A DNA stretch of 47,306 nt from Macrostomum lignano. Its lineage: Eukaryota. The stretch is taken from contig NIVC01003835.1 in the NCBI GenBank assembly GCA_002269645.1, positions 1-47,306 on the forward strand. Reading direction: 5' to 3'. The position numbers were made by a program, and so were the translations under genes. The notes under the pieces were generated by a model. That model made no database searches, was not told the DNA's origin, and was given only the letters and a program-made list of their open reading frames with translations. Of this stretch, positions 18,015 to 24,000 are shown one piece after another. Each line of letters opens with the position of its first letter. Position 1 is the first letter of the stretch.

Positions 18015-21000
18015 ATGTCGAGCTGCCCAGCTGTTGAACTGAACTGGCAACTGCCTAACCATCAGAGCCAATGCAAATTTAAAATTGATCTACCTATTTC
18101 TGAGTCACCTCATAACCATGTAAAACTGTGAGTACTTATCAATATATATTTTATATTTTTGTCAGTTTTTCATCTACAAAAGATTAAAATATCAAACTTT
18201 TCAAGGACTCCGGAGCCAAAGATCCTGTCAAATATTCTTCAGCACATTGGCAATACACCACTTGTTCGTCTAAACAGTATCCCCAACATACATGCGCAAC
18301 TGCTGGCCGACCTGGCCGATCCGGCCACCGTAAATCGTGGCTGACCAGGGGTAAGTCGCAAAATTGAGTCAACCAAAAACAGAAAAACACAAGAACCAAG
18401 AAAGGCAAGGGGAAAGCGAAAAAAGAGCAGTTCAGGGAAAATGGTGAAGCAAAAGAAAAACAATTCGCAAAAGAAGCAAACTAAGTTGTAAAAATAATCA
18501 GGTAAGTCGCAAAAGGGTTAGGTAAGTCGCAAAAGGATTAGGTAAGTCGCAAAAGGATTAGGTAAGTCGCAAAAGGATTAGGTAAGTCGCAAAAGGGTTA
18601 GGTAAGTCGCAAAAGGGTTAGGTAAGTCGCAAAAAGGATTAGGTAAGTCGCAAAAGGATTAGGTAAGTCGCAAAAGGATTAGGTAAGTCGCAAAAGGGTT
18701 AGGTAAGTCGCAAAAGGGTTAGGTAAGTCGCAAAAAGGATTAGGTAAGTCGCAAAAAGGATTAGGTAAGTCGCAAAAAGGATTAAGTAAGTCGCAAAAGG
18801 GTTAGGTAAGTCGCAAAAAGGATTAGGTAAGTCGCAAAAGGATTAGGTAAGTCGCAAAAGGATCAGGTAAGTCGCAAAAGGATTAGGTAAGTCGCAAAAG
18901 GATCAGGTAAGTCGCAAAAGGATTAGGTAAGTCGCAAAAGGGTTAGGTAAGTCGCAAAAAGGATTAGGTAAGTCGCAAAAGGGTTAGGTAAGTCGCAAAA
19001 GGGTTAGGTAAGTCGCAAAAAGGATTAGGTAAGTCGCAAAAAGGATTAGGTAAGTCGCAAAAAGGATTAAGTAAGTCGCAAAAGGGTTAGGTAAGTCGCA
19101 AAAAGGATTAGGTTACTTTTGCTTGGTGTGGACGTGTGGACGGTCACACTTGCATGTGCTTGGTGTCATTTGAAGGCGGCAAGTCTCTTCTTTAAAATGA
19201 CACCAATTGCAAGAGATTTGAATCTGTGCTTCAAGAGATATGGACGATTAAGTAGAGAAAGGTCAGTCATAGACTTACAGAACCTCAAAAATGTCAACAG
19301 AAAACTTTTACGATTTTATCGATTTTTTCGTAATCATGGGCTGTCTATGGCCAAATGTGATGCAGTGAACGAGAGGGGCTGTCTCATAAAACTACGAGAC
19401 TTGTAAAACTGCTTCTGCTGCGCCTGCAAAGTTTATTGACATTCAATTTTCAATTGTGAACTGCAAATGGATGTGCATTCAAAGACTGGGCAGCGACATG
19501 CCATCTTTACACTTTGGAGCTCCGGAACCAAATCGGCTGACATCCACAGGCAACTCTGCACAGCTCATGGCGACCATGCTGTCAGCAAGATGACAAGTCT
19601 GCCAACCGATGAATGATTTTAATGTTGTTCGCTTGTGTGATAATTTGCTTGTTATCTGTTTCACCTGCTTCTGTACTGTACTGTTGTGTTTTTTGTTTTT
19701 TCTGGAGTAATTACGCTCGTGATAAAAGTTTTCTGTTGACATTTTTGAGGTTCTGTAAGTCTATGACTGACCTTTCTCTACTTAATCGTCCATATCTCTT
19801 GAAGCGCGGATTCAAATCTCTTGCAATTGGTGTCATTTTAAAGAAGAGACTTGCCGCTTTCAAATGACACCAAGCACATGCAGGTGTGACTGTCCGTACG
19901 TCCACACCAAGCAAAAGTAACACTACTTTCTTAAGGTTGGTAACATTACTTAGGTTGGTGTCTCTTCAACTCTCATCTCTCTCTTCTTCTCTACCTTGCC
20001 TCCCCTCTTCTCTCTCTCCCCCCTTTTCCCTCTTCTCCTCCTTTCTCTCTACCCTTTCTCCTCAATGCCCTCTTCTCTCCTCTTATCTTCAGCAAAAATA
20101 TGTGCATATTTTCTTACTTCAAAGTAGAGGGAATAGAAGATTAGAGATAAGCAAACAGAGGAGAGGCGAGCGATGCGATGGGAGAAAAGATAGAAGAGGA
20201 GAGAAAAGCCGAGGGAGGAAAAAGAGATGAGAGAGAAGAGGAGATGAGAGGAAAGAGGAAAGAAAAGATGATGGATGAGATCAGAAGAGAGGAAAGAGGA
20301 AAGAGAAGAAAGTAGATGAGAGAAGAGAGGATAAAGAGGAGATGAGAGGAGAGTGAAGAGAGGAGAGATGAGAGAGTAGAAAAGAGAGGAGAGATAAGAT
20401 GAGAGAGTAGAGTGGAGAGAGACGAGAGGGAAGATAAGATGAGAGAGTAGAGTGGAGTGGAGAGAGACGAGAGGAGAGATAAGAATGTAGAGAGGAGACA
20501 GAAGAGATAGGAGAGGAGAGAGGAGAGAGGAGAGGAAAGAGAGAAGGGATAAGGGATGAGAGAGAAAAGAAAAAGAGGATGAGAAGATTGAGGAATGGAG
20601 AGAATTTGCAAAGGCCTCAAATCTTAGTTTAACATGCATTACTCCCATCTTTGCCTTTTTCCTAACTGTTAACAAGTTTTTGTTTGAGCATGACTTCAAA
20701 TTTAGAATCTATGCAAAAATAGTTCCGGGAATTGGAATTCAGTGGTTTCAAAATCTGTGGGTTTTCACAGCTTGTATCTCTACTGGATTCGTATTCTGCA
20801 TCTGATGAGCCATCTGAATCAGGGCTCTCATCTTCCATGCCAAATCGTTCTTGAGCTATAGGTCACACTGTATTCACTTCACTTACTTCTGGACATTCAT
20901 GAATCATGACTTTTGTAGTATGCTCACTACACTGTACTGACAATTTACTAATTGCTTCATGCCGCCACTAGATGACATACTGATTAGCTGTTATAAAAAC

Positions 21001-24000
21001 GCCGAATCTGCACGCAGCACTAATTAGCTGGCGAGGCATTTAGCTTTTAAAATATGGTCATAGTTACTCCTGCCGTTTACCTAAAGTTTTTGCTAGGCTC
21101 TTTCATAGGTAAGTCGCATTTTTTATCGAAAACTAAGTCGCACGGCCAGCGTAATTTCAGAAGTTGCGCATGTATGATCCCCAAAGCTGAAAATATTAGC
21201 TGCGAAATTCGTGAGTAAATTGTTTCTGGGCATTTTAGTTGCTTTGTTTCTTATATTAATCTCCCAGAGAGAACCGCTCTATCACAGAATCTCACAGTGA
21301 GAATCGCCCTATCACAGAATCTCACAGTGAGAATCGCCCTGTCACAGAATCTCACAGTGAGAATCGCCCTATCACAGAATCTTCCAGTGAGAATCGCCCA
21401 ATCACAGAATCTTCCAGTGAGAATCGCCCTATCACAGAATCTCAGTGAGAATCGTCCAATCACAGAATCTGCCAGTGAGAATCGCCCAATCACAGAATCT
21501 GCCAGTGAGAATCGCCCTGTCACAGAATCTGCCAGTGAGAATCGCCCTATCACAGAATCTCAGTGAGAATCGTCCAATCACAGAATCTGCCAGTGAGAAT
21601 CGCCCAATCACAGAATCTGCCAGTGAGAATCGCCCAATCACAGAATCTGCCAGTGAGAATCGCCCTGTCACAGAATCTGCCAGTGAGAATCGCCCTGTCA
21701 CAGAGTCTCTCAGTAAGAATCGCCCTATCACAGAATCTCCCAAGAGAATCGCCCTATCACAGACTCTCCCAGTGAGAATTGCACAGGAACAATGTTCTCA
21801 CTAATCCGCCCGCCTTCAGTGGCCAAATGCGAGTTCTTCAATGCCGGCGGCTCGGTGAAAGATCGCATCGGATTGCGCATGATTGAAGACGCCGAAAAGA
21901 GTGGACGCTTAAAGCCGGGCGATGTGCTTATCGAGCCAACTTCTGGCAACACTGGTGAGAGTCTGAGTTATAAGGAATAATGCTGATTTTCAACGGATCA
22001 CCTATTACTAACAAGTAGCGAGCTAAGAATGTTCTATGCTTCTGTCGAACTATAACAGGAATCGGTCTGGCTCTGGCTGCGGCTGTGAAAGGCTATCGTT
22101 GCATCATTGTCATGCCGGAGAAAATGAGTAAAGAGAAGGTTAACAAATGCTGGCTTGATTGTTTCTTTTCAATTTTATCTGTTTCAGTGTTTGTACTTTT
22201 AATAACGTTTCTCCCTAATCGCTAGCTGTACTTAAGCTCCTAATTATTTAACAACCCTTTCTAAAGAATCGCCCTCAAAGCCTCCTTAGGAATCGCCCTC
22301 TAACCCTCGATTATCCAACTCCTAAAAAGCATTGCAACTCTAAGGAATCGAACCCCAACCCTCTATCACTATTAAAAAAGGTGGACGTGCTTCGAGCGCT
22401 GGGCGCAGAGATCGTTCGAACCCCAACAGCCGCGAGCTTTGACAGCGCCGAATCGCACATTGGCGTTGCCAAGCGCCTACTGCAGGAGATGCCCAACGCG
22501 CACATTTTGGATCAGTATACTAATCCTAGCAATCCTTTGGCTCACTATGATGGTTAGTTAATAGTCTTGATAATTTGGCTTCTCACCCCTTGATAATCAT
22601 CATTAATCCGACTTGATAATCGTCTCTAATCCGACTTGATAATCGTCTACTCCACCTTGATAATCCTCACTAATCCGCCTTGATAATCGTCTCTAATCCG
22701 ACTTGATAATCGTCTCTAATCCGACTTGACAATCCTCTCTAATCCGCCTTGATAATCCTCTCTAATCCGCCTTGATAATCCTCTCTAATCCGCCTTGATA
22801 ATCGTCTACTCCACCTTGATAATCTTCACTAATCCGCCTTGGAAATTTTCACTAATCCGCCTTGATAATCTTCTCTAATCCGCCTTGGAAATCCTCACTA
22901 ATCCGCCTTGATAATCGTCTATAATCCGCCTTGATAATCCTCTCTAATCCGCCTTGGTAATCGTCTACTTCACTTTGATAATCTTCACTAATCCGCCTTG
23001 GAAATCCTCACTAATCCGCCTTGATAATCGTCTATAATCCGCCTTGATAATCCTCACTAATCCGCCTTGATAATCGTCTACTCCACCTTGATAATCTTCA
23101 CTAATCCGCCTTGGAAATTTTCACTAATCCGCCTTGATAATCTTCTCTAATCCGCCTTGATAATCGTCTATAATCCGCCTTGATAATCCTCTCTAATCCG
23201 CCTTGATAATCGTCTCTAATCCGCCTTGATAGTCGTCTACTCCACCTTGATAATCTTCACTAATCCGCCTTGGAAATCCTCACTAATCCCGCCTTGATAA
23301 TCGTCTCTAATCCGCCTTGATAATCCTCTCTAATCCGCCTTGATAATCGTCTACTCCACCTTGATAATCTTCACTAATCCGCCTTGGAAATCCTCACTAA
23401 TCCCGCCTTGATAATCGTCTCTAATCCGCCTTGATAATCCTCTCTAATCCGCCTTGATAATCGTCTACTCCACCTTGATAATCTTCACTAATCCGCCTTG
23501 GAAATCCTCACTAATCCGCCTTGATAATCGTGTCTAGTCTGTCTTGGTAATCGTCTCTCATCTACCTTGATAATGATCCTTAATCCGCCTTGAAAATCCT
23601 CACTAATCCGCCTTAATACTTGTGCCTAAACCCCATAGACAATTGTCACTAGTAGCCTTACGTATAATTCAAAATAATATGATTGTTAAATGTACTTGAA
23701 ATGGCGCCCCTGTAGTTTTCGTTTTCTAAGCTTCACTAGAAAATCCTTTTTAACCTGTCTACTATAAAGTCTCTTGTTCTTCTACTTTAAGTAGCAAGGT
23801 TGGAATATGCTAGCTAAAATTTGCACATCGAAATAATAACTTTTTCAACTCACTCACTGTCAGGCACAGCCGAAGAGCTGCTCGAAGCCTGTAACAATCA
23901 AATCGACATGGTCGTGGCCGGCGCCGGCACGGGCGGCACCATCGCCGGTTTGGCGCGCAAAATTAAACAGCGCTGTCCTAATTGCCTAATTGTTGGCGTT

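Follow-up and report, generated by a model that had tools for sequence, protein, structure and literature searches.

A non-autonomous class II transposon within exon 2 of a cystathionine beta-synthase gene of Macrostomum lignano

Non-autonomous members of the hAT superfamily, such as maize Ds and the Drosophila hobo-derived or Mar MITEs, combine short terminal inverted repeats (TIRs) of about 10 to 25 bp with 8-bp target-site duplications of the pattern nTnnnnAn (NTNNNNAN), lack a transposase, carry heterogeneous captured interiors, and insert in genes. The hAT ends follow the consensus 5′-(C/T)A(A/G)NG and are usually of the CAG or TAG type, and the hAT transposase features a BED finger, a DDE domain, and the hAT dimerisation domain. 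Duplications of 7 to 8 bp are also produced by the P superfamily (8 bp for the P element and 7 bp for element 1360); the TIRs of the Drosophila P element are 31 bp long and begin with CAT, and hAT elements are far commoner than P elements in animals. Sense-oriented class II elements in coding exons are familiar from the wx, adh1, and bz alleles of maize, where Ds and dSpm elements bear splice-site-like sequence near their ends and imprecise splicing of the elements from exons is known. Introners, described in Micromonas, Aureococcus, dinoflagellates, and fungi, are tens to a few hundred base pairs long, interrupt unrelated genes as introns in numerous near-identical copies, and are removed exactly by means of splice sites derived from the element and its duplication. 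In young polyploids, duplicate genes can be lost to transposons, with one of three homeologues hit and the others intact under purifying selection.

Here, these systems are compared with an element at the cystathionine beta-synthase (CBS) locus of M. lignano. The window analyzed was the entire contig NIVC01003835.1 (47,306 nucleotides) of the assembly Mlig_3_7, whose CBS locus is designated L003. We consider it quite likely that the locus records a recent cut-and-paste insertion of a non-autonomous transposon in one of three CBS copies, leaving an allele that is probably null and buffered by the others; a 2,890-bp element would have entered exon 2 of one subgenomic copy (S, L1, or L2). The element resembles non-autonomous hAT elements in its short TIRs, 8-bp nTnnnnAn duplication, absence of a transposase, heterogeneous interior, and genic position, but its ends read CATAC rather than C/TAG, the subterminal motif TAAGTCGCA points the same way at either end, and neither a hAT protein remnant nor an autonomous partner was found in the searches described below. 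With the maize alleles it shares the element class, the coding exon, the sense orientation, splice-site-like sequence near the ends, and in-frame escapes that are arithmetically possible; it differs in that, judged from sequence alone, the donors before the stop codon are very weak and strong ones lie just past it. Introners likewise have inverted ends and a target duplication in coding sequence, whereas this element is 2.9 kb long, turned up a single time in the roughly 220 kb searched, and offers no route to exact removal. The 8-bp duplication and the CAT-starting ends recall the P element, but the TIRs span 15 to 19 bp, no THAP or transposase remnant was seen among the ORFs, and its one target site agrees only in part with the GC-rich palindrome GTCCGGAC. 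No difference separates the locus from duplicate loss in young polyploids, of which M. lignano is a neopolyploid example.

The CBS gene and its interruption

The host gene (positions 18006 to 26656, forward strand; GenBank BOX15_Mlig033140g1) comprises nine exons: exon 1 at 18006-18127; exon 2 at 18206-18286 and 21185-21210, where it is split by the element; exons 3 to 6 at 21820-21954, 22059-22138, 22381-22552, and 23864-24080; and exons 7 to 9 at 25600-26044, 26147-26357, and 26562-26656. When the element and one duplication copy were omitted, translation of the spliced coding sequence was stop-free and reproduced the deposited product PAA49598.1 (P0122) exactly, and 8/8 real introns had GT-AG boundaries, in agreement with the original prediction that the nine exons bear no other lesion. 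The protein contains the Pfam domains PF00291 (PALP) and PF00571 (CBS) and its alignment to human CBS structures (663 bits) runs from end to end. Its SQC, SPHNH, and SVKDR motifs align with those of the human enzyme, and by this alignment the lysine of SVKDR, Lys90, is the PLP-binding residue. The PLP-dependent fold, the PLP lysine, the N-terminal heme ligands (Cys/His), and the C-terminal CBS domains place the protein among the cystathionine beta-synthases.

The non-autonomous, composite element occupies positions 18287 to 21176 on the forward strand (2,890 bp, or 2,898 bp with one duplication copy) and lacks a transposase domain. Its TIRs, CATACATGCGCAACTGCTG at 18287-18305 (forward strand) and the pairing repeat at 21158-21176 (reverse strand), are perfect over the first 15 nt (CATACATGCGCAACT) and reach 19 nt if one mismatch is allowed; the 15-mer is present in the window in two places only, both of them element ends (0.11 expected with ≤2 mismatches). 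Exact copies of the 8-bp duplication ATCCCCAA lie immediately outside, at 18279-18286 and 21177-21184. The assembly contains two further CBS copies, L001 and L002, and both possess the exact empty site, with a single ATCCCCAA in 20+20 bp of flanking sequence, and BLAST alignments of these copies to the window break at 18286 and 21177 with an 8-bp overlap. A genuine class II transposon, of the terminal-inverted-repeat kind, has inserted into this coding exon, and the CBS gene is otherwise intact. That TIRs and an 8-bp duplication split exon 2 had been predicted from the outset and was confirmed, with two corrections: perfect pairing of the repeats extends no further than 15 nt, and the insertion point is not directly after GNTPLVRL but within the Lys67 codon, after its first two bases.

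The insertion has left a perfect duplication and an undecayed coding sequence, which argue for a recent event. Five substitutions in the coding sequence are private to the element-bearing copy (18020 G, 18086 T, 23943 C, 25843 T, and 26008 A), and because all five are synonymous, coding decay is not evident. The flanks of the element are 97.5 to 100% identical to the other CBS copies; since the copies normally diverge by that much, this identity is the usual intercopy divergence and gives no date for the insertion.

Interior of the element and the predicted product

The element is a composite whose interior holds an expanded minisatellite with a 20-bp unit, low-complexity DNA, and what is probably a nested remnant of mariner type. 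The minisatellite (18500-19113, forward strand) consists of 30 copies of the unit AGGTAAGTCGCAAAAGGATT, every one of which contains consensus 5′ splice-site sequence. Its core, TAAGTCGCA, recurs at 18352, 21110, and 21134, on the forward strand throughout, and 30/33 of the occurrences of GGTAAGT in the window are inside the element. These repeats were also considered as an snRNA or spliced-leader-type gene, a possibility rejected on the basis of an Rfam search of 17900-21900 that returned only sub-threshold matches to the low-complexity hairpin. The segment at 19112-19921 (810 bp) has inverted arms of 199 nt each that are 96% complementary, with TA dinucleotides at its borders, and its core ORF (19467-19616) matches Pfam HTH_48, the helix-turn-helix of the Mos1 transposase (27.5 bits; cutoff, 24.1); the segment is probably what remains of a nested Tc1/mariner element. 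The low-complexity block at 19960-20600 is CT-rich and then GA-rich, with partial complementarity between its two halves. HTH_48 was the sole Pfam match among eight element ORFs, which yielded no transposase domain of the element's own, and a search of 1.84 billion representative proteins gave no relative of a 58-aa ORF that could be a transposase N terminus (20662-20838, reverse strand). BLAST detected no second copy of the element in the rest of the window, in L001 and L002, and in the three paralogue loci L004 to L006 (M. lignano DNA of about 220 kb in all), so neither a duplication consensus nor an autonomous partner could be derived, and an exact 23-mer from the 5′ end had zero matches in JGI metagenome contigs.

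Transcription through the element would bring an in-frame TGA (18342-18344, forward strand) into the message after 19 foreign codons, and translation of this read-through gives an 86-aa stub that lacks the PLP-binding Lys90 and the entire catalytic domain; the truncated default product of the original prediction is thereby borne out. Because the consensus 5′ splice sites of the element, whichever of them was used, would leave the TGA in the message, either the 86-aa stub or loss of the transcript to nonsense-mediated decay would be expected. The element-bearing CBS allele is, on these features of the DNA, probably null, and the recent null allele, one of two alternatives offered originally, is the better supported. 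Two other routes to a product were rejected. Skipping of exon 2 would shift the frame (the native exon is 107 nt long). The predicted in-frame ATG at 21174-21176 does exist, but an out-of-frame ATG at 21170 precedes it, and a product restarted at 21174 would probably miss residues 1 to 64 and with them both heme ligands and the conserved strand GNTPLVRL.

Superfamily, assembly, and splicing alternatives

Assignment of the element to hAT, as first proposed, is plausible and the likeliest choice, but at slightly less than even odds it is tentative, with the P superfamily as its chief competitor. The duplication, present on both sides and single at the empty sites of L001 and L002, the short TIRs, and the fit of ATCCCCAA to the hAT target pattern (T at position 2 and A at position 7; one site, with a chance of roughly 1 in 10 to 1 in 16) agree with hAT. 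The terminal consensus does not, as CATAC agrees at positions 1 and 2 and disagrees at positions 3 and 5, and the searches above recovered no transposase or autonomous relative. Membership of the P superfamily, or of some other superfamily that makes 8-bp duplications, would leave the account of the insertion unchanged and is possible although rather doubtful. P elements make duplications of the same length, the ends start with CAT and not with CAG or TAG, and no hAT protein remnant was found in the element's ORFs; nevertheless, the duplication agrees with the hAT pattern, the P-element target motif is matched at just 4/8 positions (again at one site), Pfam identified no THAP domain among the ORFs, and hAT is much the more widespread superfamily in animals. 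A more basic concern is whether the element truly lies in the exon. Chimeric scaffolds are reported to make up about 36% of the Mlig_3_7 assembly length (PMC10733133), and the contig, only 47 kb long, is a mosaic of blocks that match different copies, with 12600-17400 identical (100%) to L002 and 21177-22587 identical (100%) to L001. A mis-join, however, does not produce a perfect 8-bp target duplication around perfect inverted ends, both flanks are colinear with the other CBS copies, and SNPs private to the contig lie on either side of the element, which makes a chimeric artefact very unlikely. Because the contig is a mosaic and chimeric scaffolds are common, the subgenome that carries the insertion is uncertain, as is the fixation of the insertion.

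The original prediction also raised the possibility that the element acts as a new, imprecisely spliced intron, in the manner of maize Ds or an introner, and yields a functional in-frame CBS. Its arithmetic holds: a junction from 18329/18330 to 21149/21150 leaves an open frame and adds 26 aa net, some two dozen further pairs also keep the frame (including 18277 to 21186, −4 aa), all of them with weak donors, the sense-oriented element is rich in splice-site-like sequence, and the copy shows no coding decay. A recent insertion explains the absence of decay equally well, however, and the sites themselves argue against rescue. Donors before the TGA have U1-duplex energies of 0.7 to −2.4 kcal/mol, much weaker than any natural donor of the gene (eight donors, −4.1 to −10.9 kcal/mol), and only ACC/GTAAAT at 18330-18331 (forward strand, −1.9 kcal/mol) has any plausibility. 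Just 21 nt beyond it, and downstream of the stop, is the consensus donor GGG/GTAAGT (18351-18352, forward strand, −10.3 kcal/mol), followed by 30 more; in total, more than 30 near-consensus donors lie closely 3′ of the stop, and the strong donors inside the element (−10.3 to −12.1 kcal/mol) all come after the TGA. The candidate acceptor CGGCCAG (21148-21149, forward strand), with 8/20 pyrimidines upstream, has the poorest tract among the natural and candidate acceptors (11 to 16/20 at the eight natural ones), and the added residues would fall in conserved sequence, 23 residues ahead of the PLP lysine. Exact removal of the element with one duplication copy is impossible with canonical splice sites, as 0/9 registers have GT-AG, GC-AG, or AT-AC ends (AT..TG, TC..GA, CC..AT, CC..TC, CC..CC, CA..CC, AA..CC, AC..CA, and CA..AA), and at 2,890 bp the element is not short in the introner sense. 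The introner-like reading and the rescue by splicing are thus not supported beyond the arithmetic. We regard a new intron of this kind as very improbable, and still less credit is given to the specific claim that the allele is expressed and, by imprecise splicing via the weak pre-stop donors, encodes a CBS that still works despite a small insertion or deletion. A search of public protein sets with a chimeric CBS/transposon query, built from the read-through and the proposed spliced junction, returned only distant CBS fragments (≤61% identity) and also missed the known M. lignano CBS; it is uninformative either way. If such splicing did occur, a metazoan DNA transposon would have been caught at the first step toward an intron, and the roughly 30 consensus 5′ splice sites of the element would be active in RNA processing.

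CBS copies and the deposited gene model

The reading preferred here, a recent and probably null insertion, is consistent with the gene content of the assembly, which holds two intact, near-identical CBS copies (L001 and L002) and a 73%-identical paralogue family; because these remain, loss of the interrupted copy would be tolerated. The DV1 line has three subgenomes that are ∼1.4 to 2.4% diverged, all present in Mlig_3_7 (PMC10733133). An intact copy elsewhere, together with either stop-containing transcripts or none from this allele, had been named at the outset as the signature of a simple knockout; intact copies with the empty site do exist, which agrees with the genomic half of that signature. 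The locus would then be a concrete case of redundant copies beginning to vanish in a young polyploid. The perfect duplication, the perfect ends, and the empty sites in the sister copies point to recent cut-and-paste DNA transposon activity in M. lignano, for which DNA transposons are reported at 3.05%, with superfamilies not split out (PMC5730564 supplement). A native active element could in principle serve as a genetic tool. Otherwise the event is an ordinary one for which known mechanisms suffice, implying no new biology, and the exception is the public gene model, which is wrong.

The deposited 527-aa model omits the element exactly. In the annotation pipeline, de novo transcripts were aligned by BLAT (minId 0.8, globalNearBest 0.01) and RNA-seq reads were mapped with up to 1000 multimaps (PMC5730564). 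The model is most likely a mapping artefact, in which transcripts of intact copies were placed on the interrupted copy, and not a product of splicing. PAA49598.1 (BOX15_Mlig033140g1) is thus shown as an intact CBS at a locus that is interrupted by a transposon, a database error, and the element-bearing copy should be treated as probably dead when functional copies are counted or knockouts are designed in polyploid M. lignano.

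A filled site and two empty sites at the CBS locus

The CBS gene BOX15_Mlig033140g1 (18006-26656 of NIVC01003835.1; product PAA49598.1) is interrupted by a 2,890-bp transposon located at 18287-21176, which possesses terminal inverted repeats and is bordered by an 8-bp duplication, with ATCCCCAA present on both flanks (18279-18286 and 21177-21184). The inverted repeats, called perfect in the original prediction, are so over 15 nt (CATACATGCGCAACT); the full 19-nt stretch carries one mismatch. The terminal 15-mer has no further site within the window; with up to two mismatches allowed, 2 sites were found against a chance expectation of 0.11.

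The exon translation of the window is 100% identical to the 527-aa M. lignano protein PAA49598.1, and the GenBank locus of this protein is identical to window 8006-36656. The 90% cluster of PAA49598.1 contains three GenBank proteins from three separate contigs of GCA_002269645.1 (Mlig_3_7), the other two being encoded at the sister CBS loci L001 (NIVC01000433.1, Mlig021308g1) and L002 (NIVC01002694.1, Mlig006005g1). At both sister loci, the 20-bp left flank of the element is joined directly to the 20-bp right flank, with one ATCCCCAA each. When the window was compared to L001 by BLAST, the alignment broke at 18286 and restarted at 21177, with an 8-bp overlap in L001 coordinates. The window copy and the two sister loci are a textbook case of filled versus empty sites, and this comparison is the strongest evidence for the insertion. 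The predicted 8-bp duplication was thus confirmed, and the search for other CBS copies that the original prediction had proposed returned, in addition to the empty sites, a second CBS-like family, Mlig000058 (548 aa, 73% identity), with three copies (L004, NIVC01001296.1; L005, NIVC01000662.1; L006, NIVC01001472.1). The Mlig000058 genes are far longer (18 to 25 kb), and their neighboring genes are conserved at all three loci.

In a three-way comparison of the coding sequences of the window copy, L001, and L002, five substitutions were private to the window copy (18020 G, 18086 T, 23943 C, 25843 T, and 26008 A), all of them synonymous, while of the three amino acid differences among the copies, one was private to L001 and two to L002. 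A recent insertion is indicated by these solely synonymous private changes and likewise by the intact duplication and the perfect 15-nt ends. The private single-nucleotide differences also show that the window contig is a genuine third haplotype. The DV1 line harbors three subgenomes (S, L1, and L2) that are ∼1.4 to 2.4% apart and are all represented in Mlig_3_7, where chimeric scaffolds account for ∼36% of the assembly length (PMC10733133; PMC5730564). The presence of three CBS loci agrees with this structure. Identity along the window is mosaic: positions 12600-17400 are 99.9 to 100% identical to L002, positions 17400-18286 are ∼97.6% identical to L001 and L002 alike, and positions 21177-22587, immediately 3′ of the element, are 100% identical to L001. 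Exchange among subgenomes, by gene conversion or by recombination, may have produced this mosaic, as may consensus chimerism of the assembly; it does not affect whether the insertion is real.

Consequences for the CBS product

Upon removal of the element and one copy of the duplication, the coding sequence comprises ten blocks (nine exons; 1,584 nt) that translate exactly to PAA49598.1, and the real introns of the gene are GT-AG in 8/8 cases, in keeping with the prediction that the nine exons are otherwise intact. PAA49598.1 can be aligned over its whole length with human CBS structures (663 bits), including the heme-ligand motifs and the pyridoxal phosphate (PLP) lysine (Lys90, in SVKDR). The insertion point lies two bases into the Lys67 codon. 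Read-through into the element adds 19 foreign residues before a TGA at 18342-18344, yielding an 86-aa product that lacks the catalytic domain, in agreement with the truncated default product proposed from sequence. Skipping of exon 2 was rejected as a rescue because its native length of 107 nt would break the frame.

The original prediction also offered an escape by splicing, from a donor at 18330 to an acceptor at 21149, with the transposon possibly behaving as an introner-like new intron. This junction is indeed open and in frame, adding 26 aa, and enumeration of all GT dinucleotides in the 5′ part of exon 2 and the pre-stop part of the element, paired with all AG dinucleotides in 20900-21205, gave about two dozen open in-frame pairs (−25 to +57 aa). 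As a proxy for donor strength, the energy of the duplex formed with the 5′ end of U1 was used. The natural donors of the CBS gene (n = 8) range from −4.1 to −10.9 kcal/mol, versus +0.7 to −2.4 kcal/mol for the candidate donors before the stop, the one at 18330 scoring −1.9 kcal/mol. The strong donors of the element (GGG|GTAAGT at 18351, −10.3 kcal/mol; the internal minisatellite, −12.1 kcal/mol; and 21109, −10.5 kcal/mol) are all downstream of the TGA, so their use would keep the premature stop in the message. The proposed acceptor has 8/20 pyrimidines in the 20 nt upstream, the lowest of the candidates, compared to 11 to 16 for the eight natural acceptors. Given the weak donors before the stop, the strong ones after it, and the poor acceptor tract, splice rescue is feasible on paper but would be highly improbable.

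The deposited gene model, PAA49598.1, implies exact excision of the element and one copy of the duplication, which nine registers would produce. GT-AG, GC-AG, or AT-AC boundaries were found in none of these nine, and the introner-like reading finds no support in the sequence. The Mlig_3_7 annotation placed de novo transcripts by BLAT with near-best hits kept (minId 0.8, globalNearBest 0.01), tolerated up to 1000 multimappers in RNA-seq read mapping, and called open reading frames (ORFs) only after merging, on the merged transcripts (PMC5730564). Because transcripts of the two intact copies would align to the window copy across a 2.9-kb gap, the gene model is best explained as a mapping artifact rather than as evidence of splicing. 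A practical by-product is the probable misannotation of the GenBank protein PAA49598.1. The insertion into the CBS exon is real and recent; of the three redundant CBS copies of this neopolyploid flatworm, it has most likely inactivated one. Events of this kind are ordinary, and the insertion provides evidence for DNA-transposon activity in the recent history of M. lignano, a model species.

Anatomy and affiliation of the element

The 5′ inverted repeat is followed by a 200-bp A-rich region with two CTGGCCG motifs, a single inverted CTGGCCG being located near the 3′ end, and by a minisatellite on the plus strand (18500-19113; 614 bp, 30 copies of AGGTAAGTCGCAAAAGGATT). The minisatellite core, TAAGTCGCA, recurs at three further sites of the element, one close to the 5′ end and two close to the 3′ end, each time on the plus strand. 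Each minisatellite unit holds a perfect AG|GTAAGT 5′ splice site consensus, and 30 of the 33 GGTAAGT heptamers in the window are inside the transposon, sense to the CBS gene (18500-19113; also 18350, 21108, and 21134). These heptamers may reflect by chance the expansion of a subterminal motif or may influence RNA processing. At 19112-19921 lies an 810-bp segment whose inverted arms are 199 nt each and whose borders are TA dinucleotides; its core contains a Mos1-type HTH_48 remnant (27.5 bits, above the Pfam cutoff), and the segment is probably a nested Tc1/mariner-derived remnant. The element also includes a low-complexity block, CT-rich and then GA-rich, and its 3′ part consists of a 570-bp unique region and the 3′ inverted repeat.

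Pfam detected no transposase domain in the ORFs of the element, no relatives were found for its one plausible leftover ORF, and Rfam gave no match above threshold across the element region. BLAST revealed no second copy or autonomous relative in ∼220 kb of M. lignano DNA, and the 5′ end had no match among metagenome contigs. Typical hAT ends are of the C/TAG type, whereas those of this element read CATAC.... Its 8-bp duplication fits NTNNNNAN, as do those of hobo and Hermes (PMC3276498; PMC2803484), although the P element likewise generates 8-bp duplications (PMC3276498). The element is a class II transposon that makes 8-bp duplications; its most likely superfamily is hAT, the label of the original prediction, which the duplication supports but which is unproven, considering the ends, the lack of a transposase, and the P element alternative.

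Other features of the window

CBS introns 2 and 5 to 8 each contain one large minisatellite with 23- to 32-bp units, plus a TGTC microsatellite (repeats at 21258-21779, 22588-23618, 24151-25229, 25273-25589, and 26386-26507). The intron minisatellites vary in length among the three CBS copies, and the gene spans are 8,651, 8,617, and 5,217 bp. A GC-rich block at 8000-10400 (58 to 62% GC), shared with L002, carries an ORF with an RNase H domain (9948-10319; 36.5 bits in Pfam) as well as long overlapping ORFs and probably represents what is left of a retrotransposon. Two adjacent, mutually related MFS transporter ORFs (MFS_1) are located on the minus strand at 41652-42959 (131 bits) and 45814-46857 (57 bits), the latter with an apparently truncated or degenerate N terminus. 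A 531-aa minus-strand ORF (33181-34776) has no Pfam match; its N-terminal half is rich in cysteine, and it also contains a hydrophobic segment and long stretches of polyglutamine. Outside the CBS gene, minisatellites with 16- to 23-bp units and up to 86 copies are present at 1296-3240, 3692-4524, 27429-28488, 29019-29499, and 31991-32392, an abundance consistent with the 13% tandem-repeat content reported for the M. lignano genome.
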